A DNA stretch of 64,000 nucleotides from assembly GCF_006345805.1 (NCBI RefSeq), contig NW_021833018.1, positions 192,404 through 256,403 of the forward strand, in the 5' to 3' direction. Position 1 is the first letter of the stretch, and every line of letters starts with the position of its first letter. The notes beneath the pieces were generated by a model that saw only the letters and a list, made by a program, of their open reading frames with translations, was not told where the DNA came from and did no database searches. Positions 12,878-63,473 of the stretch are shown one piece after another. The translations under genes and the position numbers were made by a program. This DNA is from Octopus sinensis (lineage: Eukaryota).

Positions 12878-13236
12878 ATCACCAATAACACACGTACTAG
12901 AAAATTTTTGATGAATTTTATTTGTTATTTTTAATTTTAATTATATAATTCAAATTTTAATTCATTAGTGTAGTTCAAAATATGATCTTTTAATAGCTGC
13001 TTTGATTCCTCTTAATTGACATCATAAAGTGCATTTGAAATAGCGATTAAAATTTTAATTTTGAAATTTAAATATTTTTTAACTGCGATTGATGAAACAG
13101 TCGACGTTATGGGAATTGCACCACGTTCGATTTTGAAATTGAATTCAAATATTTTTTCGAATTTTTTTCGAATTTTTTCTAAGTCCATAAGTGTAACGAC
13201 CTAGGCTCGGTAACACCCTAGGCTCGTGACATAATA

Positions 13237-14078: not shown

Positions 14079-14084
14079 TAATAG

Positions 14085-18205: not shown

Positions 18206-20371
18206 TCTTAATAATAAAATGGTATGGTGTGTGTCTGTCTGTCTGTCTGTCTGTGTGTGCACACCAACTTCAAATTGGCAATACGATGTCCTCGACTTAC
18301 ATGATGAGGTCCTTAAAACCTTCCCCCCAAAAAAATAAAAAAAAAATTTCTGCATTTTGGTTAAAATGAACAACTACAATGTCCTCGACTTACATGATGA
18401 AGTCCTTAAAACCTTCCCCCCAAAAAAATTAAAAAAAAATTTTCTGCATTTGGTTAAAATGAACAACTACAATGTCCTCGACTTACATGATGAAGTCCTT
18501 AAACCTTCCCCCCCAAAAAAATTAAAAAAAAAATTTTCTGCATTTTGGTTTAAATGATAAAACAATACAATGTCCTCGACTTACATGATGAAGCCTTAAA
18601 ACCTTCCCCCCCAAAAAAAATTAAAAAAAAATTTTCTGCATTTTGGTTAAAATGAACACTACAATGTCCTCGACTTACATGATGAAGTCCTTAAAACCTT
18701 CCCCCCCAAAAAAAATTAAAAAAAAATTTTTGCATTTTGGTTAAAATGAACAACTACAATGTCCTCGACTACATGATGAAGTCCTTAAACCTTCCCCCCA
18801 AAAAAAATTAAAAAAAATTTTCTGCATTTTGGTTAAAATGAACAACTACAATGTCCTCGACTTACATGATGAAGTCCTTAAAACCTTCCCCCCCAAAAAA
18901 AATTAAAAAAAAATTCTGCATTTTGGTTAAAATGAACAACTACAATGTCCTCGACTTACATGATGAAGTCCTTAAAATCCCCCCCAAAAAAAATTAAAAA
19001 AAAAATTTCTGCATTTGGTTAAAATGACACAACTACAATGTCCCGACTTACATGATGAAGTCCTTAAAACCTTCCCCCCAAAAAAAATAAAAAAAAATTT
19101 TCTGCATTTTGGTTAAAATGAACAACTACAATGTCCTCGACTTACATGATGAAGTCCTTAAAACCTTCCCCCCCAAAAAAAATTAAAAAAAATTTTCTGC
19201 ATTTTGGTTAAAATGAACAACTACAATGTCCTCGACTTACATGATGAAGTCCTTAAAAACTCCCTCCCAAAAAAAATTAAAAAAAATTTTCTGCATTTTG
19301 GTTAAAATGAACAACTACAATGTCCTCGACTTACATGATGAAGTCCTTAAAACTTCCCCCCAAAAAATCAAAAAATTATTTTCTGCATTTTGATTAAAAT
19401 GAACAACGCGAATGTCCTCGACATTCATGATGAGGTCCATTAAAACTTCAAGGCAAAAATCTCACGTATTAAGAAATCCTTGATGAAAACGACAGCGAGA
19501 ATATAACAAATGATGAACTCCCAATTATTCGCGATAAAGAAATTCAATTCATCCTATGTTTTCTCTTTAAAATTAAATGCATATATCATTATCGACCATG
19601 AATCAAAATTAAAGCTATTTATATTTGACTTTGACAGAATGTGCAATCACAGATTGCACGACTTTGAATAGAGTGTGCAATTAACAGATTTTGAAAAAAC
19701 CACTTTGATAGTTGAAACCACATTAGCACAATCATTAACACAATTTACCACCAATTGACGCACGACCTTGAATAGAGTGTGCAATTAACAGATTTTGAAA
19801 AACACTTTGATAGTTGAAACCACATTAGCACAACCATTAACACAATTACCACCAATTGACAGCGCAATCAGAAGAATTTGCGTAAAAATATTAACTATTT
19901 ACTTGAGTTTTTCGTAAAGATAGAATTTATTTTCGGTATGCCTCTTTTCTAAACTTTTTTATTATTCAAAAATAATTTTTTAAATAGATAACCGAAGGAG
20001 GAAAAACGAAGCTGAAGAAAAAACGGTCAGCTTAATAAGGTAATTAATTAAATCTTTTTTGTGTGTCGCTTTCTTGCCTGCCGCATCTCCCCTGCCCCAT
20101 TTCCGCCAGTAAAAAAACAAAAAAATAAAAAAAAAAAAAAAAGGAAATTACAAGGAAAAATGAAAAAATTAAATATAAAAAAAATAGACCACAAAAAAAT
20201 GAAAAAAAAAGTTTGCAATGACAATAAACAAGGCCCAGGGACAGTCATTAAAGGTAGTTGGGTTATTTTTAGAGAGTGAGTGCTTTTCACATGGACAGCT
20301 GTATGTGGGATGCTCGAGGGTAGGCAGAAGAGAAAATTTATTCATATATGCCAAGGAAGGACGGACGACAA
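18206..20371 (+). mobile_element. Non-autonomous Helitron copy A (3' end missing)
   Basis: A|TC 5' end (TCTTAATAATAAAATGG), (CTGT)n microsatellite, satellite array, duplicated ~105-bp segment, helicase tail [12 protein letters not shown]...[13 protein letters not shown]. Same family as 44345-46965. Confidence 0.9.
18280..19430 (+). repeat. Tandem ~93-bp satellite, about 13 units, inside Helitron A
   Basis: Unit gttaaaatgaacaactacaatgtcctcgacttacatgatgaagtccttaaaaccttccccccaaaaaaattaaaaaaaattttctgcattttg; variation mostly in homopolymer lengths. Confidence 0.95.
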
Positions 20372-24714: not shown

Positions 24715-26004
24715 TTATAATTTTTTAACGAGTTGTACTACATCCTCATCGCACAAAACGTGTTCTTTTCCACATTTCTGAGGTTGGTGCTTGACAGAAT
24801 TCCCCCAAACAAAAGCACTAAAATATAGTAGAGACACTCACTAATTCAGCTCTCGAATAATAGACTTGTGTATCTTATTACAAAAATCCTCGATACTGCA
24901 CTTGGAAACCTTAAGAACCACAGGAGATCGATAGTCTGGGACCTCACCTTTGGGTCGTGTGTATCTAAGAATATTAAAAAGTCCGTACATTCTAACTAGT
25001 CCCAGTTTTTCCCACATCGTTTGCAACAACTCATCAAAATTCCACTTATTTTCCGAACTAATTGGCACACAATTAGGCAGTTGGCACACCAAATCCAACT
25101 CCTTTCAATAGACCCTAGAAAGAATAAACCTGAATGGATATTTTATCTATTTTATTAAGAACGTATATGCAGGGAATATATGTCCTATTCCCTTCCACAA
25201 TATCTATCAGGTCATCAAGGGAACAGTCCCCCTTCAGTAGAATGTCGGCGTGACATATTTTATACTCCGCCAGCAGAGTAGTGACTGTCTCTAAATCCAA
25301 TTCTGATTGATCCACCTATACTATTGACATTTCTGAACACGAAACCATAGTCTTATAGTTTATTCCACCCTTCTCCTTCTTTCGAAAACTTATGGGAGGG
25401 ACTGATTTGTTAAGACGAATTCCGAAGCCTTCTAACTCTCTTTCAATTATTTTTTTCTGTTCTAGTGGTCTGGTTACATCGAGGACCACAAAAATTAGCA
25501 TGCATGTTCGGGCTACTGATATGACCTGCCTTCCCCTTCCCTTTCCGTCATTAGCCCCTTCGATGATTCCCGGAAGATCCAATAACTGAATTTTTGCTCC
25601 TTTGTAACGAATCACTCCCGGAACTGTAGTCAGAGTAGTAAACTCGTATTCAGCCACTTTTGAATAAACTCCGGACAAATTTGAAAGTAAAGTTGATTTT
25701 CCAACAGAAGGAAAACCTAATTTATGAATTCTTTTTAACATTAATTAAAAATATTATTTATTACCAACAAAGCCGACTCGTGAATCTCCTGTCTTAGCCA
25801 CCTCAAAAGTCTCGTGGTTGGAACTTCCCCCGCATCCTTTTGGGTCGAGTAATTCGCGCTTTAGTTTAGCTTGACGAGCTTTGAGCATGCAAATGTGATG
25901 CATAGTAGCCTTATTTTTTTGTGTCCGATTAAGCTGTATATTAAATAATAACACTTGCTAACCTCGGCATCAATTTCATTTATTCTTTCTTGTATTTTTT
26001 GCAT
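24715..26004 (-). CDS. DRG1: Developmentally regulated GTP-binding protein 1 (OBG family), 6 introns of 24-49 nt
   Basis: RTQKNKAT..H...[62 protein letters not shown]-domain [35 protein letters not shown]. Confidence 0.96.
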
Positions 26005-28232: not shown

Positions 28233-29389
28233 TTAAGACATTTCAACAACCACTGGCATTTCTTCGTCGTCAACAACGTCAAAATTCCACGAAAAGAACT
28301 GCAAACAGAATTCTTTAAATTCACGGGCCTTTTCCTTTAATGGACATTCATCCAAATCAGAAATGTTGTCCATCAAGCGTCTGATATTGACAAATATGAA
28401 ATTCTCTCCATCTATAATATCCACGAACATATCTTGAGGAATTTTTTGTAAATGAAAGTACAAAACGCTCAAAAAACGTCCAAACATAATGTCATGTGTG
28501 TCTAACAGCTCTCTGCAGCTGCAAATGAGCTGAACGATTTCTCTCCACTGCTCAAGAGAAGCATAATTCAGTCCGCATAAAAATACAACAAAACACAATT
28601 GCAGTTCGCCAAGTACCGTGTTAGACCTTGTTCCAAACACTGAAAGAAACTCCTTGCTTCTATCGAGACCAGATTTTGTAACTGACGAAAAATCATTTTC
28701 GGAAATAAGAGCAGATATGTAAGAATTTCTTGATATATGTGTATATCTATATGCAATGAACATACAATAAATATGCCTCATGCAGGTTGACTTGAGTGGC
28801 GCTGATGTTGTTTGTTTACCAGATAATCTGTCTTCAGTCGTACTAGAATGACAATACAGCTGAGGCGATGAAAAAATAGTTTTTCCAGTAGGCTGCAGTA
28901 GAGAAACAAGCTCGGAGTCTAGATAGTTTGTTAATGAGACCCAGTTGCGGTGTCTGCATGATTAGTAATATTTACTCATCAAGGGGGTAGCATGCTAGTC
29001 TTTGGTCGTATCTTTCCATATTTCCAAAGAAAGAATCGTCAGAATAGTCCAAAAATTCTTGATTGATTAGAAATATACAAACCTTCGTTTTTAGAGTCCC
29101 ATTTCTTGCAAATAATCATATTTCCTGTAATATGGACAAAAAATCCTTTTCTAGATGAAGAATCCCCATGTTTGTTAGCAATGTTGTAATATATGAAATG
29201 ATTTCCGTCAGGTACCATTTTAAATCCCATAAAATTTAGTGTGGTGACCCACGATTTGCAGTTTATACCGATCTCAGTCTCTTTAGGGGGGTTCAGAAGT
29301 AAGATTATTCCATTCTTTCTAAATAGTTCTTTCGCTTTCTCTGAAGATAAAGGTAAAGTTAAGTCGTCACATTCATGTACTTTAGACAT
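28233..29389 (-). CDS. AAR2: AAR2 homolog (U5 snRNP assembly factor)
   Basis: N-terminus AKELF..GIILLLNPPKETEIGINCKSW...FMGFKMVPDGNHFIYY...RKGFF; C-terminus LGELQLCFVVFLCG..ASLEQWREIVQLIC, IPQDMFVDII, EEMPVVVE. Confidence 0.88.
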
Positions 29390-35829: not shown

Positions 35830-37340
35830 CAATTTCAAGATAAGAGTTGCTTATTTTCTTAAAACAATTGTGTAATAGATGAACAGCACACGTGAGATGG
35901 AATAACTTGGGGTAAAAATTTTTAAGTATTTTGCCAGCTAAAACATAAACATTAAATGTCACCGTCCAGACCGGCCGGGGCGCCAAATCGGTCAGGTCAA
36001 TTATCTAAATACAAAACAAATATTTTTCCTACAAAACATTTCATTGCAAAAAAATATTGATAATAAAAAAATAAAATCTTATTAATAAAAAAGTTCTAAA
36101 AAGTTGAAAAGATTAGCATTAATCAATGGTTTTAGTTGAATTAACTCGAGACACCCTCGAAAAAATTAGGGAGTATTTGGAATCAGGCCACCTTGATAAT
36201 TCCTTGAGTTCGGAAGAAAGGGCACGAATACGGAAATATGCCAAAAAATTTAGTTTCAAGGAGAACAACACCTACATTTCTAAAAATGGCTCAAAGTTGC
36301 GTTTTTTTTGTATCGAAGACGCTGAACTTAAGTTAAAATTCATTGAAGTAGTATATTTGTCTATTTAAATTAGGTTCAACACAATCTTAATCACTTTGGA
36401 CGTGATAGGTTGTACAGTTTATTGACACTCACAATTTATGGTGCCATACGTACTGATGTGGCTTTGAAAATGGAAATATGATGAAGTGAAAAGTGGCGAT
36501 GAAGTATTAATACGGCATGATAGGGATGCAAACCCGGGTTATAGAAAATACCCATTATACGACGAAATATCTGCACAAAAATATATTGTGAAAAATAGGG
36601 ATCGAGAACTCGTAACGATAATTAATGAAGAGGATTAAAAAGGTCAAAGGATACATATTAGCAGAGTAAAAAAACTTTAACTGCAAATATTCATGGGGTT
36701 CGTTCTGTGTTTTTTCTCGTGTCATATTTACTTAATTGTGAAATAATTGTGCCATTGTTACAAATTCGACGCGGCCGAAGGGCGCATAGGGAAAAATATT
36801 CACATTGAATCATGCGGCCGTAGGCCGGATTGTGTTTTAGAGTTTTAATGATAAAAATAGAAATTTACAACATTTTTAAAAATTAAAAATGGATTTTTCT
36901 AATAAATTTTATTGTTGAGAATTGTTTGGCTAACCTTGGTTAAAGCGTTTTTAAATAAAATGCAAAATCAATACGGTAATTATCTGGAAATGACTGGATG
37001 TTGGTTTTTTATGAACCCAGTAACTTCAATATTTTGGCAAAAATAATATTAAAATCAACAAAAGAATGAACAGAAAAAGAAAATAACTTCCGAAAGGTAG
37101 TTTTTATTAAAAATTTTATACATAACCGATCTGGCGCCTCGACCTATCTGGACGGTGACATTAAATTTTACATAATTTCATATAATTTTCAGCATCCGAA
37201 ATTAACAAATTTCGAAGTGCATTGTCGACTATCTGAATAATACTGCTCTTGTTAAGTGTAGATTCTATCGCCTTAAACAATATCCGATATGTTGTTTGAG
37301 GAGAATTTAACGATCAAATCATCACAGCAACGTTAATTTA
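35830..37340 (-). mobile_element. Old CGGBP1-like hAT remnant split by the nested Ginger-like element
   Basis: IVDNALRNLLISDAENYMKLCKI (37165-37250) joins FYPKLFHLTCAVHLLHNC (35850-35950) when 35957-37160 is removed. Confidence 0.65.
35957..37160 (+). mobile_element. Internally deleted Ginger/Tdd-like DNA transposon
   Basis: TIR TGTCACCGTCCAGA...TCTGGACGGTGACA; 5-bp TSD TTAAA at 35952-35956 and 37161-37165; integrase N-terminal ORF, 26-nt intron, then HNLNHFGRDRL (start of the HHCC motif). Confidence 0.88.
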
Positions 37341-40399: not shown

Positions 40400-42340
40400 A
40401 TAAATCCAACTAAATCAATAAATTATTCAAAATTATTTTGTTTTTCCTCAGAGTATTCGTTTCCTGTCACCTCATCATGTCTCCTCTTCATCGAGTTAGC
40501 TTCCCTTTGGTGAGTGTTCTACACTGCATAATCTTTGTTGAGAATCAATGCTTTAGTCATTACGTCTTCGAAACCATGTTTATATTCTACGAACATTCCT
40601 TCCAACGTCTTCTTTAATGCAATTTAACGCCAGAACACTGTCTTTAATGCCAATCAAATCCATGTATGTTTTAAAATACTTGGAGGTGATCGCATCCCAG
40701 GTAATGACAATCGGAAGTATTTTGACTTTGGCTTTGAAAATGATTTCTAATTCACTTGCCAGGATATCATATTTATGAAGTTTTTCAACTTCAACTGCAT
40801 TTTAAATTATCCACACATGTCACTCCAATCTCTATTAGCCATATGTGGTTTAATTTTTGTCGTATAGAAAAATGTCCGGCTTATTATATTGAATTTTTGA
40901 TTCGGTAGGGATAGTAGTGTCAACTCGTAATTCAGCAGGATCATTGGTAATCACGCTTTGGATAGAGTGAGTCTTTAACCTTTTTGATTTTTTGAATCCA
41001 AATTTTCTGCATACGTGCATTTGTATGCATTTAACAATTTCATTATGTCGCCTTGTATACGCGGAATTAATCATTTTATTGCATCGAGTTGCCAAATGGT
41101 CGACTGTCTTATTAGAAGATTTGCAATGTGGGCATTTCGAACCAAGTTCGCGAAAGAAAATATTCCTGTCCTGCAGAAGGAAGAACATGGCTTCAGATTT
41201 AGGGGAAATATTTCCTTTTACAATTCATTTTGAAGATGTCTGTATATTGAAAGTCTCATTATCAAGTGATTCAAATAATTTTGAATGGAGAGTTTTCTTT
41301 TTAATGGCTGTTAAGAGACACTCAATCTGCAGACTCTTTAGTGTCTGTTCAATGTGCTGGGTTGATTCATATTTTATTCGCAAGAATTCTGTGATTGTGG
41401 CCATATGTGACTTTCTTTGTTGTTCAGCCCACAGAATTCCTGCACTCCTCAGAGAAGTAAGTTTTCGCCTTTCCAGACTTGTTTTGAAATCAAGCAACAT
41501 TTTCTCAGCTTTGAAAGTGATTGATATCAATCCCCTTCCAAACATATTCCTCGGTAAGTAAAGTCTTTCTTTGCAGGCTGGTTTCATATGCACATTCAAA
41601 ATCATAAGTATCTTTCTGACTAATTTATAAATTTTTTCAAATTCACAGGATTCTAAGTCAATGAGGCCAATATAGTAATTGCACAGTGATAGAGCATGTT
41701 CATTTTTTTTATTGATTGCTTTAAATAAATTGACGGAGTTTAATTTAGTTTCCGATAACTTTTCATTACGGTTTTGCATTTCTTCTTTAATATTTTTAAA
41801 CACGTCTTCTTTGAGTACATCTGTTTTCTAAAACTCCCAAATATCTGTAGCTGTCCAGAACATCCATCAATTTACCATCATTTGTTGCTGATTTATCGAA
41901 ATTCTTCTCCAGTCCAGATGATTCAAAGTAATAGTTCACCTCTTCCATCATCCACGCCAATGTCTCCTCTTCTTTGGATAATAGCTTCAAGTCGTCAATA
42001 AATAGGAAGTGATTTGTAGAAAAGGTTAAGGAATTAATGCCAACAGAATTTATTGTTTAGGATTCGAATCTGGTCTGTGATTGTTGTCGAGATTCTTTCA
42101 AATTCTCCCCTTTTGGATTTTTTGTAATTTTAAGAACATAAAATGTCAATGACTTTCTTCTTTTCTTCGTCTTTGATAGTAGACATAAAGTATTTTGATA
42201 TTAATATATCCTTTTCAGTCAAAGACTCAATTTTATTTTAGATTCTCTGCTTCCAATCCGTTTTAAATGTATCTCTCATTGTAATTTGTTGATACAAACA
42301 TTGCGCGAAATATAAAAGATTGAAATATCTTCAATACTTG
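40400..42340 (-). mobile_element. NeSL/R4-like retrotransposon, internally deleted copy of 58925-62480
   Basis: Reverse complement of 60770-62400 and 59575-59820; lacks about 0.9 kb of RT (59825-60765). Confidence 0.88.
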
Positions 42341-43509: not shown

Positions 43510-44000
43510 TACGATGTCCTCGACTTACATGATGAGGTCCTTAAAACCTTCCCCCCAAAAAAAATTAAAAAAAATTTTCTGCATTTTGGTTAAAATGAAC
43601 AACTACGATGTCCTCGACTTACATGATGAGGTCCTTAAAACTTTCCCCCCAAAAAAAATTAAAAAAAAATTTTCTGCATTTTAGTTAAAATGAACAACTA
43701 CGATGTCCTCGACTTACATGATGAGGTCCTTAAAATCTTCCCCCCAAAAAAATTAAAAAAAAATTTTCTGCATTTTGGTTAAAATGAACAACTACGATGT
43801 CCTCGACTTACATGATGAGGTCCTTAAAACCTTCCCCCCAAAAAAAATTAAAAAAAAATTTTCTGCATTTTGGTTAAAATGAACAACTACGATGTCCTCG
43901 ACTTACATTGTGAGGTCCTTAAAACCTTTCCGCCAAAAAATCAAAAAATTATTTTCTGCATTTGATTAAAATGAACAACGTTAATGTCCTCGACATTCAT
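43510..44000 (+). repeat. ~93-bp satellite, 6 units, G/G variant
   Basis: Units read ctacGatgtcc...gatgaGgtcc. Confidence 0.93.
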
Positions 44001-44344
44001 GATGAGGTCCATTAAAAATCTCACGTATTAAGAATATCCTTGATGAAAACGACAGCGAGAATATTAACAATAATGAACTCCCAATTATTCGCGATAAAGA
44101 AATTCAATTCATCCTATGATTTTCTCTTTAAAATTAAATGCATATATCATTCAAAATTAAAGCTATTATCATATTTGACTTTGACAGAATGTGCAATTAC
44201 AGATTGCACAACCTTGAATAGAGTGTGCAATTAACAGATTTTGAAAAACACTTTGATAGTTGAAACCACATTAGCACAATCATTAACACAATTTACCACC
44301 AATTGACAGCGCAATCAGAAGAATTTGCGTAAAAATATTAACTA

Positions 44345-46965
44345 CTAGCTCGGCAGCTCGCTTCGCTCACCGCGACCTAGCTCCTGCGGAGGGCCTGTTT
44401 CATCAAACAACTATAAGTTTATGTAGATGTATAAAACTACCTGGTTAAATGTAACCCTATTCTATCGCCTGTTGATAAACGATGTTTGTCGTCCGTCCTT
44501 CCTTGGCATATATGAATAAATTTTCTCTTCTGCCTACCCTCGAGCATCCCACATACAGCTGTCCATGTGAAAAGCACTCACTCTCTAAAAATAACCCAAC
44601 TACCTTTAATGACTGTCCCTGGGCCTTGTTTATTGTCATTGCACACTTTTTTTTTCATTTTTTGTGGTTTTTTTTTTTTATATTTAATTTTTTCATTTTT
44701 CCTTTGTTTTTCCTTTTTTTTCTTTTTTTGTTTTTTACTGGCGGAAATGGGGCAGGGGGAGATGCGGCAGGCGGAAATGCGGCAGGCAAGAAAGCGACAC
44801 ACAAAAAAGCGACACACAAAAAAGATTTAATTAATTACCTTATTAAGCTGACCGTTTTTTCTTCAGCTTCGTTTTTCCTCCTTCGGTTATCTATTTAAAA
44901 AATTATTTTTGAATAATAAAAAGTTTAGGAAAAGAGGCATACCGAAAATAAATTCTATCTTTACGAAAAACTCAAGTAAATAGTTAATATTTTTACGCAA
45001 ATTCTTCTGATTGCGCTGTCAATTGGTGGTAAATTGTGTTAATGGTTGTGCTAATGTGGTTTCAACTATCAAAGTGTTTTTCAAAATCTGTTAATTGCAC
45101 ACTCTATTCAAGGTCGTGCGTCAATTGGTGGTAAATTGTGTTAATGATTGTGCTAATGTGGTTCAAACTATCAAAGTGGTTTTTCAAAATCTGTTAATTG
45201 CACACTCTATTCAAAGTCGTGCAATCTGTGATTGCACATTCTGTCAAAGTCAAATATGATAATAGCTTTAATTTTGATTCATGGTCGATAATGATATATG
45301 CATTTATTTTAAAGAGAAAAACATAGGATGAATTGAATTTCTTTATCGCGAATAATTGGGAGTTTATCATTGTTAATATTCTCGCTGTCGTTTTCATCAA
45401 GGATATTCTTAATACGTGAGATTTTTGCCTTGAAGGTTTTAATGGACCTCATCATGAATGTCGAGGACATTCGCGTTGTTCATTTTAATCAAATGCAGAA
45501 AATAATTTTTTTTTAATTTTTTTGGGGGGGAAGGTTTTAAGGACTTCATCATGTAAGTCGAGGACATTGTAGTTGTTCATTTTAACCAAAATGCAGAAAA
45601 TTTTTTTTAATTTTTTTGGGGGGGAAGGTTTTAAGGACTTCATCATGTAAGTCGAGGACATTGTAGTTGTTCATTTTAACCAAAATGCAGAAAATAATTT
45701 TTTGATTTTTTGGGGGAAAGGTTTTAAGGACTTCATCATGTAAGTCGAGGACATTGTAGTTGTTCATTTTAACCAAAATGCAGAAAATTTTTTTTTAATT
45801 TTTTTTGGGGGGAAGGTTTTAAGGACTTCATCATGTAAGTGAGGACATTGTAGTTGTTCATTTTAACCAAAATGCAGAAAATTTTTTTTAATTTTTTTTG
45901 GGGGGAAGGTTTTAAGGACTTCATCATGTAAGTCGAGGACATTGTAGTTGTTCATTTTAACCAAAATGCAGAAAATTTTTTTTAATTTTTTTTGGGGGGA
46001 AGGTTTTAGGACTTCATCATGTAAGTTGAGGACATTGTAGTTGTTCATTTTAACCAAAATGCAGAAAATTTTTTTTTAATTTTTTTTGGGGGGGGTTTTA
46101 AGGACTTCATCATGTAAGTCGAGGACATTGTAGTTGTTCATTTTAACCAAAATGCAGAAAATTTTTTTTTATTTTTTTTGGGGGGAAGGTTTTAAGGACT
46201 TCATCATGTAAGTTGAGGACATTGTAGTTGTTCATTTTAACCAAAATGCAGAAAATTTTTTTTTAATTTTTTTGGGGGGAAGGTTTTAAGGACTTCATCA
46301 TGTAAGTCGAGGACATTGTAGTTGTTCATTTTAACCAAAATGCAGAAAATTTTTTTTTATTTTTTTTGGGGGGAAGGTTTTAAGACTTCATCATGTAAGT
46401 CGAGGACATTGTAGTTGTTCATTTTAACCAAAATGCAGAAAATTTTTTTTAATTTTTTTGGGGGGGAAGGTTTTAAGGACTTCATCATGTAAGTCGAGGA
46501 CATTGTAGTTGTTCATTTTAACCAAAATGCAGAAAATTTTTTTTTAATTTTTTTGGGGGGGAAGGTTTCAAGGACTTCATCATGTAAGTCGAGGACATTG
46601 TAGTTGTTCATTTTAACCAAAATGCAGAAAATTTTTTTTTAATTTTTTTTGGGGGAAGGTTTTAAGGACTTCATCATGTAAGTCGAGGACATTGTAGTTG
46701 TTCATTTTACCAAAATGCAGAAAATTTTTTTTAATTTGTTTGGGGGGGAAGGTTTTAAGGACTTCATCATGTAAGTCGAGGACATTGTAGTTGTTCATTT
46801 TAACAAAATGCAGAAAATTTTTTTTAATTTTTTTGGGGGGAAGGTTTTAAGGACCTCATCATGTAAGTCGAGGACATCGTATTGCCAATTTGAAGTTGGT
46901 GTGCACACACAGATAGACAGACAGACAGACAGACAGACACACACCATACCATTTTATTATTAAGA
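44345..46965 (-). mobile_element. Complete non-autonomous Helitron copy C, nested antiparallel in copy B
   Basis: Plus strand A|CTAG...AAGA|T = A/T target with no TSD; the B sequence rejoins across it as in copy A. Confidence 0.93.
45460..46885 (-). repeat. ~93-bp satellite, about 16 units, A/A variant
   Basis: Reverse complement of the array at 18280-19430. Confidence 0.95.
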
Positions 46966-48190
46966 TTTAGTTAAGTTTTTCGTAAAGATAGAGTTTATTT
47001 TCGGTATGCCTCTTTTCCTAAACTTTTTTATTATTCAAAAATAATTTTTTCAATAGATAACCGAAGGAGGGAAGACGACCTTAAGAAAAGAAGTTTTTCG
47101 TAAAGATAGAATTTATTTTCTGTATGCCTCTTTTTTCCTAATATTTTTTATTATTCAAAAATAATTTTTTAAATAGATAACCGAAGGAGGAAAAACGAAG
47201 CTGAAGAAAAAACGGTCAGCTTAAGGTAATTAAATCTTTTTTGTGTGTCGCTTTTTTGGCTGCTGCTACTCTGCCTGCCGCATCTCCGGCTGCCGCATCT
47301 CCGGCTGCCCCATTTCCGCCAGTGGTTTGTCTAATCAAGGTCACTAAGCTAAATCTCCGGACTATAAAGGCTCTTAAGCATTATCTTAACTGGCTGTTAA
47401 AAAAATTAGACAGGTTGTTGCCGTGGCGGCAGAGATTTTTTTTGTTTATACTTTTTTACAAATTTTTAAAGTTTTTTTTGTTTTTTCATTTCTTTTGTTT
47501 TTAAATTATTTATTTTTATTTGTTTTTTTTTATTTTTTTGTTATTTTCTACAAATTCAACCGGATTGAATTTTTAAACTCCTTAGATCCCTCTGGAATGC
47601 CGAATCATCTTTTAAAGTTAAAGATAGGCGTTCCAGTGGTTTTATTACGAAATCTTGCGCCACCTAAATTATGCAACGGAACGAGGTTAGTTATCAAAAA
47701 TTTGATGGCTAACGTAATAGAGGCGACGATATTAACAGGTAAGTATAGAGGTGAGGATGTTTATATTCCACGAATTCCGATAATTTCTGATGAATTACCA
47801 TTTAGATTTAAAAGGCTGCAATTTCCTTTGAGGATGAGTTTTGCAATGACAATAAACAAGGCCCAGGGACAGTCATTAAAGGTAGTTGGGTTATTTTTAG
47901 AGAGTGAGTGCTTTTCACATGGACAGCTGTATGTGGGATGCTCGAGGGTAGGCAGAAGAGAAAATTTATTCATATATGCCAAGGAAGGACGGACGATAAA
48001 CATCGTTTATCAACAGGCGATAGAATAGGGTTACATTAAACCAGGTAGTTTTATACATCTACATAAACTTATAGTTGTTTGATGAAACAGGCCCTCCGCA
48101 GGAGCTAGGTCGCGGTGAGCGAAGCGAGCTGCCGAGCTAGTCTTAAATATAATGCTCATAGTGTTAATTAATCAAGAAAAACCCTAAATA

Positions 48191-51819: not shown

Positions 51820-52812
51820 TAATAATTAAAAATATTCATATTAAATAAAATTCTATTTTTATATAATGGTTAACCTTTTTTAAAAGTAATTATCATAAAC
51901 GGCTTAATTTATTTATGTCATTACCTGTTAAAAGACGACGTTCTTTGAATGAAGAAAAAAAGAAAATTTAATATCAACTGGCAAAGTGAATACTTCGTAG
52001 TCGAAACAGACAACAATAGCATGCAATGCTTATTGTGCCATGAGATTGTGAAAACTATAAAACGGGACAATGCTAAACAATATTTTCAGAGACATTTAGA
52101 CCACCTAGTTGTCAAGTCCAAGTGTTCAAGAAAAGATTCCGTCGAAAATTTGAAATACAAATTAAGACAACAAAAAAATGTTTAAAAACTTTTTTAAATG
52201 TGGCAAATGCAAGAGTTGAAGCATCCTCTCGAGTTGCTCATATCCTTGGATCTGCTGGAAAACCTTTTTCAGACGGCGAACTTGTGAAAAGATGTATCAT
52301 GGAATCAGTTAAATGCATTGATCCCGACAAGGAGCATAACTTTGAAGCAATTCCACTTTCACGTGACACAATTCAGCAAAATGAAATATTTAAAAAGTCA
52401 ATATAGATCTCGGATACCGGATGCAAACTTAGAGTCATGTTTGCGCATAATGATATCTATCCTACCAGTGGATTTCAATAAGCTCACAAAAAATACTAAA
52501 GATCCTGGCCTTCATTAGAATAACTTGTATAATACATTTCTTTTAATTAATTTTCCTTCTTTCTTATCTTTTGTCCATGAAATAATTATTTATTTTAATA
52601 ATATGATTTCCCTGATGAACGAGAGCATTTCCTGTTCAAGAACTCATTCGGTCTCGATGACAATGGGCAACTTATGCGGTCACTTGTAATAATTAAAAAA
52701 AATTACTATATTAATATCGAAAAAATAATGCAGAAAATGTGCGGCCGTGGAAGAGAAGGAAAAAAAAATGCTATGCGGCCGCAAACCCGAAAAGCTTGCG
52801 CACCCCTCTAGA

Positions 52813-54060
52813 GTCTAGACAATGAACCCGAAATGGAGATCGTTGCTAAAAGTTTGCATGACTTCTCGCATGGAGGAGTTAACAAAATTGAATATGAATG
52901 TCGACAACGATATTTCCCAGTTAAAATGAGATTATTCGAAAAGTCATTCGAAACTGTGAAATTTGTAAATTTGCGCGACCCTTAAAAGTTTTAATTTTTC
53001 TAAATCCTAGATTGGAGATATAAATAACCATGTCTTTGCATCTTGCCCAAATGAAAGATTTCAGATAGATCTTATAGATCTGAAAAGTTTTTCTACTATA
53101 AATAAAAATTATAAATGGATTTTAACGGTCATTGACGTATATAGCAGGTTAGTTTTTTTTAACAATTTTTATAGATTTTCATTTGCGAGGCCGAGCTACA
53201 CTAAGTCCTCAAATGAAGTTTGTGAAAACCTCAGATCATTATTTTTCTTAAATGGTCCGTGTCAATTTCTTCAGTCCGATAATGGGACTGAATTCAAGAA
53301 TCGTGAAATGACCAATCTATTTGAGGAATTCAATATCAAACGAATTCACGGAAGGCCAAACAATCCCCGCTCACAAGGGATTGTCGAACGCTTCAACCAG
53401 TCAATTACAAGAAAAATGGCAAAAATGATCGACAATGATAATAAAAAGTGGCTGGAAAAATTAGAAAATGCAGTGTACAGTTATAACATTTCTGTCCACT
53501 CATCTTCTAATAAGAGCCCTTTTGAAAGATACCGGGGAATAAGTGGAATAAATACAATATTTTATGGTTGTAATTATAAAATTATTCCTTAGATAATTCA
53601 AGTAATGATTTGTTGAGTCCTGATCAAGTCGATGATGAAAACAATTGTCCGAGTCCAATTGAAAATTCATGTAATTTGAATTTCTATATGTAGATGATTG
53701 TAATTATTCGTTTACAAGTCCGAAAAAATTTTCAGTTCGAAATCAACCCCATTGATTCTAATTCTAATTATTACAAAGCGATGAACAGAAAAATGAATGT
53801 TCACAATATTAATGATGAATTTAGTGTTGGTGATAAATTATGCATAAAAATTAATGTTTAGGTTCGAGTTAAAAAAGACTTTGGAACAAATCCTTCGTTG
53901 CGACTGGATAAGTTTGAATCTCCATATTATCCATCTGCAGAAATTATCAGTATTTTATCAAACAATCGCGTTGAGGTAGTTTAAACATTTAAATTTAATA
54001 GATAAAAAATTCGATGAGCAAAATATCGATTGTGCCAATGTCCAGACTTAAAAAATAATT
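52813..54060 (+). mobile_element. Ginger/Tdd-like (retroviral-type) integrase gene with tiny introns; short 5' piece at 43310-43368
   Basis: HHCC (LHDFSHGG...CEIC), ERFQIDLID, LTVIDVYSR|F, LQSDNGTEF, GRP.NPRSQGIVERFNQS, KWL..L...VYSYN..VHSS...SPFE; introns of 23 and about 27 nt. The frame LVICLD is rejoined across the hAT insertion. Confidence 0.85.
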
Positions 54061-55280: not shown

Positions 55281-56433
55281 AAGTTAAGCTTCAAGGTCAC
55301 GTCAGGTATTACGCGGCCCATAGGTGTCACAGAAACCATGTCACATAATGACACCTTGATTTAAAGATCGTCGAATTTCTTCCCAACTGGAAAGCTCCTG
55401 GCTGCGATGGAGTTTACAACTTCTTCATCAAAAAGTTGGACTCCCTACATAAGTTTCTATTTGATGAGATCAGAAATATCATTACTGGAAGCAGTCAACC
55501 CCAGAGTTGGTTTTATATCGGAATAACTTATCTTATTCCGAAAAAAGATAATTCCACTGAAGGCAGTGATTTCAGACCAATTACCTGTATGCCGTGCCTT
55601 TATAAACTCGTCAAAAAGTGTGTAAATGAGAAAATTTCTGAGTATATGGAAATATACAGTCTAATCTCTGAGTTTCAACTTGGCACTAAGAGGCATTGTC
55701 AAGGTGCAAAGGAGCAAGCACTTATTAACTGTTGTGTGAACAGGTCACATGAGTACAAATTATTTTCTTCATGGGTAGACTAAAAAAAGCCTTTGACTCA
55801 ATCAATCACGAATTCCTTGCAGTGATTCTGAAAAACTCCGGGCTTCCTGAATGGATAACAAAGTTTGTAATGTCAATAATTCCAAATTGGAAGGTCTCCC
55901 TCAAGTTAGGAAAGCAGCATCTAGGAATTGTTAACATAGAACGTGGAATATTCCAAGGAGATTCCCTGTCTCCTCAGTTGTTTATTTTGACTTTGGATCC
56001 GTTGAGCAGATTGTTGTCAGCTAAATACCCAAATTTATCAGTCAGTACCGATCAAGAAAATTCAGTCTTTTTTCTAAAAACAATTTTTTGTTTATTGATG
56101 ATTTGAAACTGCTCGCCAAAGATGAGGTCACACTCGGCTGTATGATGGAAGACGTGGATTTATTTTTTAAAGCATCGGGTTTGGAAAAGAATTGTGAGAA
56201 GTCGGCAACAAATAGTTGTTTATTGAGAAAAGATGCCAAACTGCTGGATGGACTGGATAGTTACCGTTATTTCGGTGTATTGGAAAATAAGTTTAGTCAG
56301 GTTGTTAAAGAAGTTTTAGAGAAAATTTACGGATTGAGGTTCAACAACGTATCGAAAAATTGTCTAAGACGAAACTAAATTCGGTAAATTTGTTTAAGGC
56401 AATTAATGAACATGCTTTATCTTTGTTAATTAT

Positions 56434-57097
56434 TGTGACCGGTTCATAATGAGATACGGTTGAATACGAGCCGTTAAAAAGATCGATAATTAATATACCG
56501 ATCAAAAGGCCATTACATAAAGGCAAACGTTCCGAACTAATGATTGAACTTTAAATTTTGAAAAAATGATGTTTTATATTTGAACCATGTTTGCTTTAAA
56601 ATAGTAAAATTATTTACAACATTGCAAATTATAATGTGAATTATTTTTATTTTTGATATTATAAATTGCAACATTAGCAAATTACAAGTTTGTAACAACT
56701 TTAACTCTAATCTTACTTTAACTCTAACTATAATGATTTCAACGTTATTTATAAACATATTCATCATAAAAAAGACACTAAAGAAAACAGACCCTAACCC
56801 TAATCCTGACCCTAATCCCTGACCCTGACGCTAACCCAGACGCTAACCCTAACCCTGACCCTGACGCTAACCCAGACGCTAACCCTAACCCTGACCCTAC
56901 CCTGACCCTAACCCTGACCCTGACCCTGACCCTAACCCTGACCCTACCCTGACCCTGACCCTAACCTGACCCTAACCCTGACCCTAACCCTAATATGATT
57001 TAACGGCATTCACGCCATTTAACGGCTCGTATAACGCCACTTTGACGGCTCGTTTAACGGCTCGTATTCAACCTGGGCTCGTATTCAACCGGTCACA
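56434..57097. mobile_element. Non-autonomous TGT...ACA element with internal telomere-like repeats
   Basis: TIR tgtgaccggtt...aaccggtcaca with ggctcgtattcaacc sub-repeats; 5-bp TSD ATTAT at 56429-56433 and 57098-57102. Confidence 0.88.
56791..56993 (-). repeat. Degenerate (CCCTAA/CCCTGA)n tract with a duplicated higher-order unit
   Basis: accctaaccctaatcctgaccct...gacgctaacccagacgctaaccctaaccctgaccct (x2)... Confidence 0.9.
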
Positions 57098-57102
57098 ATT
57101 AT

Positions 57103-58187
57103 TGTGGCGCGCCATAACTGAAACGGGCGCCAGACGTGTAACATTTTGACCCTGAGAAAACCGCATAATGACCTTGATTAGAAATTAACAAAACTTTGAA
57201 ATAATGTGGCGCGCCATAACTGAAACATCTAATGAACAACAACATCTAATGAACAACATATAATGTACTTAAATTTATTTAAAAAATAGTATTGGTTATC
57301 CATTAAATTTGATAAATTATCTTTAAAAAAATAATATTTATTTTAATGAATTCATTCTAAAAATTTGTTATTGTTTCCCTTTTAATTAGAACATAAAATG
57401 ATAGAAATAATGAAAATTCTTAAAGAATTATAAAGGCCTAGTCTACTTTAATTTTAAAAATGTAGTTTAAAATCTTTAAGTTTGTTATCATTCTCTTATT
57501 TGGACAATAGCTGAAGTTCCTTTAAATTTATTTTTAAGTTAATACAGAAGAGATTTTCTGATCAAATAAAGCCTTACCTACCTAACGGCCTTCGGCCGAA
57601 ATTTTTAAGATAGCTACTATTCCCTTATGCGGCCTTCGGCCGCGGCATTTTTGATACAGATACTATCTCAACATACTTTCAATCTACTATTTTTCAATTT
57701 GTACAGGGATTTATTAAAAATAATTTCAAAACAATTTATTTAAATTTTTTTAATTTGAAAGTAAAAAACCGTTTTTTCGATTCCATCTTCATTTTCTATC
57801 AAAGTGAAACTGAGAATGAATTCGATCACAATGATATTTCATTGTTTCGTGATCATTCAAACAAATTACATGCTTATTTTCACCATTTATTTCATTAAAA
57901 TAAAGTGTTCCTGAAATGAGATAGGAAAATGCCTCCGATTAAAATGAAATTCTTGCATTTTTGTAAAAATCTTGATCTTTGCGTTCTTGACAATCGCTCT
58001 GAAAATTTCTCATGTTGTAAATACTGAAGAATATCATTATATTCATTATCATCTTTGACTGCATTAGCTATTCTCATTTGCAAAAATAATAGTTACCGGC
58101 AGACAACAATTAAATGACATTTGAAGGTTAAAATGCAAGGCCAAATTGTTACACGTCTGGCGCCCGTTTCAGTTATGGCGCGTGACA
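57103..58187 (-). mobile_element. Internally deleted Ginger/Tdd-like element
   Basis: 40-bp TIR tgt(gg/ca)cgcgccataactgaaacgggcgccagacgtgtaac; TSD ATTAT; ORF 57895-58083 (YNDILQYLQHEKFSERLSRTQRSRFLQKCKNF) resembles the integrase N-terminus at 36126. Confidence 0.82.
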
Positions 58188-58924
58188 ATTATTATATCGG
58201 CCTTTTGGATTTGAAACCGTTCGCTTTTGATGAAATTGACAAATTTGTCAGGAAGCTGTTAATGGATCTAAATACAACAATTCTAACAGAGCTGAAAATT
58301 CAATATAAAAAACCCGACATTTTCATCTACGGCAAAAGAGAGAACCTAATATGGCTTATTGAAGTGGGTGTGACTTCAATAGATAACCTAAAGAGCGTGG
58401 AAGTAGAAAAACTGCACAAATACGACATTTTAGCTAGTGAATTACAACTGATTCACAAGGCTAAGGTGAAGCTTGTGCAAATTGTCATTACGTAGGATGG
58501 AATCGTCTCAACAATCTACCGCAAGTACATGGAGCTTCTCGGGATTGAAGAACGTGTTCGTTCTTACATCCAGACTGTAACGTTGAAGGCCACTCTGGAG
58601 AGCATGTTTGTCGAGTACAAACAAGGCTTCAGTGAAATTCTGGACTCTGCAAATTCCGTAAATAGAGACTGGCGGAAATATAATTTCTCTATGAAGATCA
58701 GCAAGTCCCTTAGGAGACTTAGAGACTGCACGCCCCAGGAGGAGATTGAGGATCATGGAGGAGAAGATCAAAATGGAGTCATGGGAAACTCGGAAAGCAA
58801 AAATTTGAGAGTCGTCTAATTACTAGTTTAGCTCAATTTTGATTAATTATTAATTTTATATTCGATCAATGATTTATTTATGATTTCGATAAAAATATTT
58901 TATTGTTTGTTGAATTGTAAAGAT

Positions 58925-61900
58925 TGTTCTTGTGGTGTACGGATGGTTGGTTTTTCGCAGTCTGAAAAAGTCATTCCCATGGACGGATCCACAGAAATTT
59001 TAACAAATGGAACTCAAGAAAGTGTGGACCTGACAGTTCATGGTCATCCTGATGCCTCGGGCAATTGCAATTACGGACCCCCACAGACCCCTTCAACTTT
59101 GATTCCCATGAAAGCTATTTGTGAGTCAATCGAATCTTCCAACCCTGGAGAATGGATGTCATCTCTATTGATTTGTGTCAAAGACCGTCTTAAACGAGTC
59201 CCCAGAGGAGGTTGGCCGCTCATTGCTACATATTTTAATTCTAAATTTGGAAAAAAGAAATCAATATATGAATTAAAAAAACTCGCTTCTGTCTTCGGAA
59301 ATAGAAGCGAAATTTCCAAAAATGAAAATAAAACGAATAATAATTCCCCTGATTTGGCACTTTACAACAAGGTGCATGAGGAATTATTAATTCAAATTGA
59401 TGCAAATAATTCTAAAACAATCGATGCGAGGCAACAGACAAGGAAGATACCGTCTCAATATGTAAATCACGAGTTAATCGAAATAATAAATAAATCATTG
59501 ATCGAATATACAACAAACAACCTACCTACAAGTATTGAAGATATTTAAACTCTGATATATTCCGCGCAATGTGTGTATCAACAAATTACAATGAGAGATA
59601 CATTTAAAACGGATTGGAAGCAGAGAATCTAAAATAAAATTGAGTCTTTGACTGAAAAGGATATATTAATATCAAAATACTTTATGTCTACTATCAAAGA
59701 CGAAGAAAAGAAGAAAGTCATTGACATTTTATGTTCTTAAAATTACAAAAAATCCAAAAGGGGAGAATTTGAAAGAATCTCGACAACAATCACAGACCAG
59801 ATTCGAATTCTAAACAAAAAGGTGTCTATTGCAGATTCAAGGCGACAATACGGAATTGATAATCGGAAGTTTGAGTTGAATCGAAGGTCGTTCTACAGAT
59901 ACCTCCATTCTAACTCTGATAATGCTCTGATTGATTGTTTCGACACATCTGATTGTCTCAAATTTTGGATGGACGTCTGGAAGAAAAAGGACAAAAATGA
60001 GTTAAGTTTTGGAGTGAATAAGAGAGTTACTGGTGCTCAGCACCATGACTCCGACATCAATGACGAGTTCATTTAAACTTAATTGAATCTCTTCCTAACT
60101 GGAGAGCTCTGGGATGTGATTGTGTATACAATTTTTTCATCAAAAAATTGGATTCTCTTCACAAATTCCTATTTCAAGAAATCAGAAATATTATTAACGG
60201 AACTAGTCACCCGCAAAGTTGGTTTTATACTGGAATCACTTATCTGATCCCAAAGAAAGCAACCTCTATTGACCCCAAGGACCTCAGACCGATCACATGT
60301 ATGCCATGTTTGTACAAACTGGTTACAAAGTGTGTGAATGAAAAAATTGCAATATATGCCGACACTTACAACTTGATAACTGAGTACTAGCTTGGAACTA
60401 AACGACATTGTCAAGGAGCAAAAGAACTTGCACTTTTAAGCAGATGCGTCAACAGACCGCACGATAATAAATTATTTTGTGCATGGATCGACGTCAAGAA
60501 AGCATTTGACTCAGTTAGTCATGACTTTCTTGTTGAAATCCTCGAAAACTCTGGACTGCCTAATTGGATAGCTAGTTTTATTATGTCAATTATTCTAAAC
60601 TGGAAAGTCTCTTTGAGATTGGAAAAAAAACAGCTGGGAACTGTTAATATAGAACGTGGTATACTCCAAGGCGACTCTCTGTCGCCCCAATTATTTGTAC
60701 TTTTTTTGGATCCGTTAAGTAGATTTTTATCTTCAAAATATCCAAATATATCGATAAATTCTGGTGGCATTAATTCCTTGACCTTTTCTACAAATCACAT
60801 CCTATTCATTGACGACTTGAAGCTATTGTCCAAAGAAGAGAAAGACATTGGCGTGGATGATGGAAGATGTGAACTATTACTTTGAATCATCTGGACTGGA
60901 GAAGAATTTCGATAAATCAGCAACAAATAGTTACCTATTAAGAAATGATGGTAAATTGATGGATGGTCTGGACAGCTAGAGATATTTGGGAGTTTTAGAA
61001 AACAGATGTAGTGAAGTACTCAAAGAAGACGTACTCAAAAATATTTAAGAAGAAATGCAAAACCGTATTGAAAAGTTATCGGAAACTAAATTAAAACTCA
61101 GTCAATTTATTTAAAGCAATCAATGAACATGCTCTATCACTGTGCAATTACTATATTGGACTTATTGACTTAGAACCCTGTGAATTGAAGAAATTGATAA
61201 ATTAATCAGAAAAATACTTATGAATTTGAATGTGCACATGAAACCAGCTTGCAAAGAAAGACTTTACTTACCGAGGAATATGTTTGGAAGGGGATTGATA
61301 TCTATCATTTTCAAAGCTGAGAAAATGTTGCTTGATTTCAAAACAAGTCTGGAAAGGCGAAAACTTACTTCTCTGAGGAGTGCAGGAATTCTGTGGGCTG
61401 AACAACAAAGAAAGTCACATATGGCCACAATCACAGAATTCTTGCGAATAAAATATGAATCAACCCAGCACATTGAACAGACACTAAAGAGTCTGCAGAT
61501 TGAGTGTCTCTTAACAGCCATTAAAAAGAAAACTCTCCATTCAAAATTATTTGAATCACTTGATAATGAGACTTTCAATATACAGACATCTTCAAAATGA
61601 ATTGTAAAAGGAAATATTTCCCCTAAATCTGAAGCCATGTTCTTCCTTCTGCAGGACAGGAATATTTTCTTTCGCGAACTTGGTTCGAAATGCCCACATT
61701 GCAAATCTTCTAATAAGACAGTCGACCATTTGGCAACTCGATGCAATAAAATGATTAATTCCGCGTATACAAGGCGACATAATGAAATTGTTAAATGCAT
61801 ACAAATGCACGTATGCAGAAAATTTGGATTCAAAAAATCAAAAAGGTTAAAGACTCACTCTATCCAAAGCGTGATTACCAATGATCCTGCTGAATTACGA

Positions 61901-62480
61901 GTTGACACTACTATCCCTACCGAATCAAAAATTCAATATAATAAGCCGGACATTTTTCTATACGACAAAAATTAAACCACATATGGCTAATAGAGATTGG
62001 AGTGACATGTGTGGATAATTTAAAATGCAGTTGAAGTTGAAAAACTTCATAAATATGATATCCTGGCAAGTGAATTAGAAATCATTTTCAAAGCCAAAGT
62101 CAAAATACTTCCGATTGTCATTACCTGGGATGCGATCACCTCCAAGTATTTTAAAACATACATGGATTTGATTGGCATTAAAGACAGTGTTCTGGCGTTA
62201 AATTGCATTAAAGAAGACGTTGGAAGGAATGTTCGTAGAATATAAACATGGTTTCGAAGACGTAATGACTAAAGCATTGATTCTCAACAAAGATTATGCA
62301 GTGTAGAACACTCACCAAAGGGAAGCTAACTCGATGAAGAGGAGACATGATGAGGTGACAGGAAACGAATACTCTGAGGAAAAACAAAATAATTTTGAAT
62401 AATTTATTGATTTAGTTGGATTTATTAGATCAATGGTTAAAGAAATGTCCGAGAAATATTAGTACATTAGGTCATAATGA
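58925..62480 (+). mobile_element. Near full-length NeSL/R4-like RLE retrotransposon with stops and frameshifts
   Basis: N-terminal region, RT (LRPITC, DVKKAFDS, RGILQGDSLSP, LFIDDLKL), CPHC..TVDHLATRC, RRHNEIV, NKPDI, EVEKLHKYD. Confidence 0.92.
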
Positions 62481-62551
62481 ATGTTATAAACTAATTATTT
62501 CATCAGTTATCCTAAAGTTAATAATAGATCAAATTTTGTTAAATTGAAGAT

Positions 62552-63473
62552 TTACTGCTGAACGATAAGTGCCACTATTAGAATAATGAAAAATCTAATA
62601 AGACTAAATCCTTCAATATTTCGATTTAAAGTTATACTTGGCACAGAGTTGGAGTTTTCCTCAGTTACTTTAGTCGCTATTTCATTTGAATTTTTACTGT
62701 GGTGGGCTAATGATTTTTTCTAAAAATCTAACTTTTCTCCGTTGTTACTGTGTTTGTATTATTCTTCTCATCTAGAAAATAATAAAATGTATTTTATGAA
62801 ACCGGTGCAAAGTTTATTTTCACAAAATGGAGCAGAATCTGGACATTGTTTGCACGAGAGTCCTGCAATATAAGGCCGCACTCTTCCTTGATTTCCTCTA
62901 AATAAAACTCTTTACACTCAATAATAACATTGGTAAATAATTGCAAAATGTAAGATAAGCATTTTCTACCTTCCTCTTATTGATATCTAAATTACGACAC
63001 AATGTTGTGCTGCATCCTACTCGGTCAGTTTTTGCCCATGCAATCTATTAAATTAAAATAAATAAGACCTGAGTGTAATGAGTACAGATATAGGAACATT
63101 TATTTGTCTGATATGAATACTGTTGATGTTCCTCATAAAATGATTTTATCGCATCTTGGGGATTTTCTTTGTCTTGGAATGTTACAAAATGATACATGTT
63201 GTGTAATAAATATTTTCTCCTCCATTGACGTGCTTAAACAGACATTTCTGACTTGATTCTGTAGCCATGGCTTCGAGCTTCTCATCCCATTTCTTTGAAT
63301 TGTGTTTATGGCATATTACCATTTTTAGCATATTAGAGGCAGGAGGGCTCACGATTGATCGATATTTGTTGTGTGCATCCAAAAACTTTTTTCGATCCTC
63401 GGACGAAGTAAGAAGCTAAAGCTAGAATTAAACTTGTTACAATATTGTGGAATAAAATTATAAAGACGAACAT
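62552..63473 (-). CDS. CAP/SCP gene, copy 2 (inverted duplicate of 39352-40273)
   Basis: Position x maps to 102825-x; the copy appears identical by eye. Confidence 0.88.

Follow-up and report, generated by a model that had tools for sequence, protein, structure and literature searches.

Two distinct TGT...ACA transposable elements, one of them a MITE with a telomere-like array, share one 5-bp target in a dead LINE of Octopus sinensis

In the terminal 64 kb (192404-256403) of contig VCDQ01005567.1 (GCA_006345805.1) of Octopus sinensis, the stretch analysed here and referred to as the window, two distinct TGT...ACA elements stand head-to-tail in one 5-bp target within a dead long interspersed nuclear element (LINE). 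We call them E1 (56434..57097, plus strand, 664 bp) and E2 (57103..58187, minus strand, 1085 bp). The order is ATTAT-[E1]-ATTAT-[E2]-ATTAT, and the triple ATTAT around two TGT...ACA elements of these lengths, claimed in a preliminary description of the window, proved correct to the single base. The first copy of the target-site duplication (TSD; 56429-56433) forms, with a host A and the first T of E1, the heptamer AATTATT at 56428..56434. The second (57098..57102) provides the only bases separating E1 from E2 and reads AATTATT together with the flanking A and T, and the third (58188..58192) lies in the same heptamer at 58187-58193. We consider it probable that the pair arose by two independent, sequential cut-and-paste insertions into one 5-bp target. 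The stack is essentially an ordinary nested or tandem insertion of transposable elements (TEs) in a TE-rich intergenic region, and its interest is moderate to low.

The empty site can be read from related copies of the host. Three paralogous LINE copies are present in the window, namely the interrupted copy A, copy B (60054-62600, plus strand) and copy C (42900-40300, minus strand), and copies A and B are arranged head-to-tail, spaced only about 1 kb. At the empty site the uninterrupted copies B and C read ...CTGTGCAATTACTATATTGG... / ...GAACATGCTCTATCACTGTGCAATTACTATATTGG..., with a single 5-mer. The site of B (61138..61159, plus strand) is CACTGTGCAATTACTATATTGG, with the protein EHALSLCNYYIG, and its heptamer AATTACT differs from the preferred AATTATT; the site of C (41667..41688, minus strand) is located within an intact open reading frame (ORF) of 192 aa. 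With E1, E2 and two of the three ATTATs taken out, the alignment of copy A runs base for base over the junction, so that the insertion of 1759 bases consists precisely of E1 + 5 + E2 + 5. Copy A consists of a reverse transcriptase (RT) part up to the insertion (55343..56433, plus strand; RVT_1 matches on ORFs at 55436-56378; 71% identity to the paralogue at 60054-61138) and a continuation (58193..58860, plus strand) with the PD-(D/E)XK restriction-like endonuclease part, where the Pfam restriction-endonuclease match is weak. One nucleotide is deleted in a Cys codon just upstream of the junction (TGTGCAAT vs TGT-TAAT, the paralogues having EHALSLCNYYIG), so that the protein frames fail to rejoin though the DNA does. 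The earlier statement that the host ORF rejoins is accordingly right for the DNA, which is continuous over the junction, and inexact for the frame. Copy A also has a separate, unrelated deletion of ~700 bp near 58290, ~100 bp downstream, by which the CCHC finger has been lost relative to B and C (58193-58860 compared with 61160-62600).

The CCHC and KPDIF...E.GVT...EKLHKYD motifs are visible in paralogue B, and copy A has endonuclease motifs. The order RT, CCHC finger and PD-(D/E)XK endonuclease agrees with the NeSL clade. Judged by these motifs, the host is a LINE with RT and a restriction-like endonuclease, an architecture common to all R2-group clades and so not specific to NeSL, and the LINE homologues found bear no clade names. 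A paralogue ORF has a 92% identical match in "uncharacterized protein LOC115228247 [Octopus sinensis]". Moreover, the octopus LINE ORF is matched across 97% of its length, at 39% identity, by a protein annotated from the microsporidian Pancytospora philotis, a finding that may reflect horizontal transfer or host contamination of the microsporidian assembly.

E1 has the ends TGTGACCGGTT...AACCGGTCACA, with TGTGA at both termini, and inverted arms of 51 nt that are 82% complementary (56428-56478 and 57053-57103, each including 6 flanking nt). A subterminal 15-mer, GGTTGAATACGAGCC, occurs in three exact copies, one on the left and two on the right, against 0.04 expected by chance; as the unit GGTTGAATACGAGCC(GTTAAA) it is distributed asymmetrically, with one near the left end and at least three near the right end. 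Beyond the window, we scanned seven stretches of the same assembly (L002-L008), lying around LINE-derived proteins and comprising ~151 kb of non-redundant DNA, which together with the window made 215.5 kb. On another contig of this sample there is a second full-length E1 (L003:2758-3460) of 703 bp, with identical termini, the TSD GTTAT and no adjoining element. Its left arm has 352 matches, 3 mismatches and a few indels to the E1 of the window and its right arm matches at 104/104, which makes 3 substitutions per 459 positions. The only ORF of E1 is an AT-rich one of 76 aa whose exact product has no record in the collection searched. Thus E1 is short, bounded by terminal inverted repeats (TIRs), flanked by TSDs and non-coding, with near-identical copies of 664 and 703 bp at different TSDs, and it represents a true, young, multi-copy family of MITEs (miniature inverted-repeat transposable elements) that is mobile by itself. 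One extra copy per ~151 kb suggests thousands of copies genome-wide, within very wide limits.

E2 is bounded by TIRs of ~40 bp (57103-57142 and 58148-58187) with the termini TGTGG and TGTCA; 36 nt match with 1 mismatch, against 0.00 expected, and arms of 58 nt are 90% complementary. Its transposase remnant reads on the minus strand and consists of two mutually frame-shifted ORFs. Remnant 1 (57898..58092, 65 aa) belongs to the transposase's N-terminal region, being 48% identical to L008:12739-12933 over 58 aa (E=1e-18), and remnant 2 (57792..57938, 49 aa) matches L008:12471-12782, which carries Integrase_H2C2 (44% over 45 aa, E=7e-13). These matches lie in a relative of E2 on another contig (L008:9661-13051, 3391 bp, TSD ATAAT), which stands alone. 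Its TIRs are homologous to those of E2 (TGTCACGCGCCATAA(C/A)TGAAACG...), and both arms are homologous and collinear. On its minus strand there is a decayed transposase with Integrase_H2C2 (1.8e-5) and rve (1e-16), whose core has as its best solved relative the integrase of prototype foamy virus (PFV; 1e-11). Remnant 2 of E2 reaches as far as the first pair of His residues in the H2C2 zinc finger, beyond which everything, including the DDE core, is deleted; the breakpoint lies between 57778 and 57814, where the left arm is joined to the end point of remnant 2; E2 keeps just the N-terminal ~100 aa. We therefore describe E2, by comparison with this relative, as an internal-deletion derivative of an integrase-encoding TIR transposon, that is, of a parent of autonomous type. 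The "integrase fragment" reported earlier in E2 is indeed a transposase remnant, recognizable through the L008 relative, but an N-terminal one that holds no catalytic residues. Pfam gave no relevant match on either remnant, an exhaustive phmmer search of the 49-aa remnant against 1.84 billion representatives returned two spurious repeat proteins only, and a word-indexed search with the 65-aa remnant gave zero candidates.

Elements with TGT...ACA ends and a 5-bp TSD could also be solo long terminal repeats (LTRs), whose signature is the same (PMC2836005, PMC6839031), or the junction could be an assembly artefact. We regard this as very improbable. Inverted repeats of 40-58 nt and inverted subterminal units are features of TIR transposons, unlike LTR termini, and in the E2 relative the integrase is situated between the TIRs, the only RT inside being a nested LINE fragment on the opposite strand; on these grounds solo LTRs were excluded. 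In addition, E1 occurs full-length with identical exact ends on a second contig, and the host rejoins exactly, which a chimeric join would not give.

Among DNA transposons, the E2 family, as seen through the L008 element, fits best with a Ginger2/TDD-like transposon by its termini, TSD and domains. The published features of Ginger2/TDD are TGTNR termini and a 4-5-bp AT-rich TSD (PMC2836005, PMC10045372). TGTNR...YNACA termini are present in E1 and E2, and their relatives have TGTCA, TGTCG and TGTGA; TIRs of tens of bp are found in E1 (51-nt arms) and E2 (~40 bp). The TSDs are AT-rich and of 5 bp throughout (ATTAT, ATTAT, GTTAT and ATAAT, and TAATA, TATTA and TTAAA in related families), and the E2 family, through the L008 element, combines H2C2 with a DDE core and has no RT or RNase H of its own. 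By eye, no clear GPY/F follows the core in L008:11762-12031. Ginger1 was excluded by its 4-bp CCGG/CCGT TSD, and IS3EU/GingerRoot by TA..TA ends and a 6-bp TSD (PMC6839031, PMC10045372). The structure is made up of new representatives of familiar kinds of element, Ginger2-like ones and a derived MITE. In the repeat annotation of O. vulgaris, 49 families are listed as "Unclassified TIR" and Ginger is unmentioned (PMC13282606).

How the two elements came to share one 5-mer can be approached from the target sites, which are A/ATTAT/T at the stack, A/ATAAT/T at the L008 element (the equal duplex site on the opposite strand) and A/GTTAT/T at the second E1 in L003 (slashes enclose the duplicated bases). 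AATWATT occurs at 303 sites in the 215.5 kb, or 0.14% of positions, and two of the three independent loci lie on it (P ~6e-6). The heptamer is palindromic about its middle W, and such a target would be expected of a symmetric integrase complex that acts with a stagger of 5 bp. At the stack, AATTATT is intact in all three heptamers (56428, 57097 and 58187), while the uninterrupted paralogues have AATTACT. Since T is the first and A the last base of the elements, each insertion recreates AATTATT on both sides, and a second hit in one 5-mer is consequently not very unlikely. In the sequence of events that we favour, both families insert into the palindromic, AT-rich heptamer A/ATWAT/T at a stagger of 5 bp; the first insertion would leave two intact AATTATT heptamers, one at each element end; and the second element would then enter one of the regenerated heptamers and make the third ATTAT. 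Regeneration of the target would in this way be the cause of its re-use. Stacking by motif preference is uncommon rather than extraordinary. The shared palindromic target, renewed at each insertion, does much to explain the triple TSD, and a need for a special attraction between the elements is not supported.

The preliminary description had left a choice between a second integration into the TSD of the first element and co-mobilisation of the two as a tandem unit. Under the latter, E1-ATTAT-E2 would have arrived as a composite by means of the left end of E1 and the right end of E2, and the inner ATTAT would be the fossil of an earlier stacking. A perfect ATTAT duplication does flank the outer pair, and were ATWAT strongly preferred by both families, it would not be very improbable for the inner and outer 5-mers to be identical. 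Nevertheless, the outer ends are non-cognate, sharing only TGT[G/C]AC with a TIR alignment score of 7 vs 29-37 for true pairs. E1 is by itself mobile and young, the E2 relative is solitary in L008, a second composite copy was not seen in the 215 kb sample, and co-mobilisation still needs an original stacking event. We hence give the composite hardly any credence, whereas the occurrence of E1 and the E2 relative each on its own, together with the non-cognate outer ends, supports integration into the existing TSD.

Several points weigh against two motif-driven insertions of Ginger2-like elements. The four insertion events of the two families seen in 215 kb are a small sample and give a poor measure of how strong the heptamer preference is. 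Such elements lie beside about 1-2% of AATWATT sites, by which only a few percent of copies should be stacked, and despite this expectation the window contains a second stack (13192-14083). The Ginger2 placement is provisional, being drawn from termini, TSD and domains rather than phylogeny, and the TSDs of metazoan Ginger2 are 4 bp, not 5. E1 is without a known autonomous partner, and an intact transposase was not found, both copies seen being decayed.

The second stack is composed of a 40-bp TIR-only stub (13192-13231; TGTAACGACCTAGG...CCTAGGCTCGTGACA, ending in GTGACA), TAATA, a MITE at 13237-14078 and TAATA again; the own left flank of the stub, ATAAG, does not match. It bears on another explanation, still one of sequential insertions, in which the second element is actively steered to the terminus of the resident one, whose bound transposase presents the phosphodiester between end and flank (the bond cleaved at excision) as a target. 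Such end-directed integration would yield a head-to-tail junction with a spacer of TSD length, as in IS30/IS911. Two exact stacks with a 5-bp spacer among ~8 TGT...ACA elements in 215 kb exceed what motif availability predicts, and of the 3 occurrences of GTSACA-N5-TGTSR, for which 0.36 would be expected, two are real element ends. IR-targeting by IS30 and the similar "targeted" transposition of IS911 insert beside a resident inverted repeat (IR) and form a new IR-IR junction (PMC9333248), and IS911 is a member of the IS3 family, in which the transposases show kinship to integrases of retroviral type (PMC2836005). On the other side, the TIRs of E1 and E2 differ, hence their cognate transposases are presumably different; neither the other E1 copy nor the E2 relative has an adjoining element; and, with the preferred heptamer regenerated, the odds against a stack are already down to the percent range. 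The sample, besides being partly selected for stacks (the window was noticed partly because of them), is too small, so end-targeting stays a minority hypothesis, which we think unlikely though clearly less so than the composite. An "ACA-N5-TGT" at L007:12345 was taken as chance, since no TIR partners were found there and a calmodulin-like reading frame was seen by eye.

Repeated insertion into a regenerated heptamer is thus still the explanation we prefer for the stack, and the other distinctive feature of the pair is the array inside E1. This telomere-like array (56790..56993, plus strand, C-strand units) is 204 bp long and degenerate, being made of CCCTAA, CCCTGA, CGCTAA and CCCAGA units with higher-order units of 18 and 36 bp. 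The E1 copy in L003 has a matching array at the equal internal position, which is more regular, (CCCTAACCCTGA)n, and 235 bp long instead of 204 bp. Equal position and differing length in two copies indicate that the tract travels with the element and that its length changes by slippage. Outside the array and the class-level terminus TGTSAC, there is no similarity between E1 and the MITE at 13237-14078 (842 bp; TGTCACATGCC..., TSD TAATA), which has a GGTTAG array at 13436-13565. A kinship between them was therefore rejected, the array being the sole match, and the earlier view that E1 is unrelated to the 13.2-kb element and that telomere-type repeats occur in two families was confirmed. All three telomere-like tracts in the 215 kb lie inside TGT...ACA MITEs. 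TTAGGG is the only cephalopod telomere motif determined by experiment (PMC13218726). Array-bearing MITEs are well known in molluscs (PMC3879986), and in the literature we found no description of a telomere-motif array within a mollusc MITE.

As for the origin of the array, it is plausible, by analogy with the insertion of interstitial telomeric sequences at repaired breaks (PMC8537989), that telomerase added it as filler at the break or deletion junction that created the MITE, after which slippage would have produced units of 12, 18 and 36 bp. A broader proposition joins this idea with end-targeting, namely that octopus integrase-class transposons actively target resident ends, that the telomere-like arrays are telomerase filler and that MITEs are the main spreader of interstitial tracts. 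We hold it to be rather improbable as a whole. If true, end-targeting would be a eukaryotic counterpart of IS30/IS911 that builds head-to-tail stacks with TSD-length spacers, and array-bearing MITEs would be the main vehicle of interstitial telomeric tracts in cephalopod genomes.

Besides the MITE at 13237-14078, two other members of the class were found. The element at 35957-37160 (1204 bp; TGTCACCGTCC...) has TIRs of ~38 bp and the TSD TTAAA (target A/TTAAA/T), and its TIR shares GGGCGCCAGA with E2. The element at L003:7651-17765 (10 kb; TGTGACATGGGC...; TSD TATTA) is nested, containing two LINE copies and a hAT (ZBED5-like) gene, and its CGTTAC/CATGGGC subterminal repeats resemble the 13.2-kb MITE. 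The termini of these other members have TGT[C/G]AC in common. A decayed integrase (52812..53589, plus strand), located 3 kb upstream of the stack, has a weak Integrase_H2C2 match and an rve match of 3.9e-11. Its similarity to the core of the L008 transposase (45% identity, E=3e-50) places it in one group with the E2-family transposase. TIRs were looked for around this integrase at 52.8-53.6 kb and none were found, and a link to E1/E2 is not shown. Just upstream of it there is a hAT-type zinc finger (51949-52182).

Within E2 itself, there is an extra direct copy of the first 22 nt (57205..57226, plus strand); it is preceded by AAATAA (57199-57226), vs AATTAT at the true end, and is absent from the L008 relative. 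A conserved module of ~40-60 nt, with one or two CGGCCTTCGGCCG hairpins (TTCCCTTATGCGGCCTTCGGCCGCGG..TTTGATACAGA), occurs at 57586-57644 in E2, at 36770-36827 in the 35957-37160 element and at one unrelated locus (L005:11777-11816), and is without Rfam match. An Rfam scan of 56300-58300 gave just one sub-threshold miRNA-like match, so the module does not correspond to a known RNA. The TIRs were also sought as exact matches among metagenome and viral contigs, in collections that do not include the octopus genome, with 0 matches, and the exact products of window ORFs near the site, sought as a way to alleles or orthologous loci, had no record.

A further candidate element at 44450-48035 was rejected, for its flanks are inverted too, so that the repeat does not start at TGT; inverted repeats that are nearly identical and at least 90 bp long form its boundaries, and at its end there is a Pif1-helicase (Helitron-type) ORF. 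AT-rich 10/12 TIR candidates in the window, L002, L003 and L006 were taken as chance. Arrays of a 94-bp satellite occur in both orientations at 18282-19446, 43510-44017 and 45432-46881. Apparent exons of host genes are found on the minus strand at 25316-25741 (GTPase domain, MMR_HSR1, 1e-20) and 28233-28781 (AAR2 C-terminal region, 6e-35), and the TE-rich stretch lies downstream of or between real genes.

For a part of the octopus repeatome that is poorly annotated, these results supply a curated anatomy, with exact ends, a TSD, the motif of the target, a relative of autonomous type and a MITE. They also lead to a rule, by which T...A elements preferring A/N5/T regenerate their own target, and this may explain tandem TE stacking elsewhere. 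Furthermore, TTAGGG-type tracts in octopus can be MITE cargo, which matters for telomere-motif scans, for scaffolders that use the motif and for the interpretation of fluorescence in situ hybridization (FISH).

Compared with known systems, the octopus elements share with Ginger2/TDD (Bao, Kapitonov & Jurka 2010, PMC2836005) the TGTNR...YNACA termini, TIRs that are tens of bp long, a TSD that is short and lies in an AT-rich, roughly palindromic target, and a transposase of H2C2 and retroviral-type DDE without an RT of its own, accompanied by deletion derivatives and MITEs. The 5-bp TSD is like that of Dictyostelium TDD-4/5, while published metazoan Ginger2 elements have 4 bp within RTATAY (PMC2836005), unlike the octopus target A/ATWAT/T. 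The mollusc tandem-repeat MITEs (DTC84/pearl; PMC3879986) are, like E1, high-copy, non-autonomous "cassettes" for an internal array that varies in copy number. They have, however, a putative AA TSD and satellite-like core repeats plus an unrelated microsatellite, whereas E1 bears a telomere-type hexamer and its variants in an integrase-class MITE. Interstitial telomeric sequences (ITSs) inserted at double-strand-break repair are similar to E1 in having a short internal (TTAGGG)n-type tract, but they are single-locus repair scars, while the E1 tract is part of a mobile family copied to many loci and has by now given rise to higher-order units of 12, 18 and 36 bp (PMC8537989). Finally, in IS30/IS911, as here, two element ends abut with a spacer of TSD length, a structure present twice in our data; those systems work by copy-out/paste-in and join like ends of one family (PMC9333248), whereas here two different eukaryotic families are joined, and regeneration of the motif is the simpler explanation.

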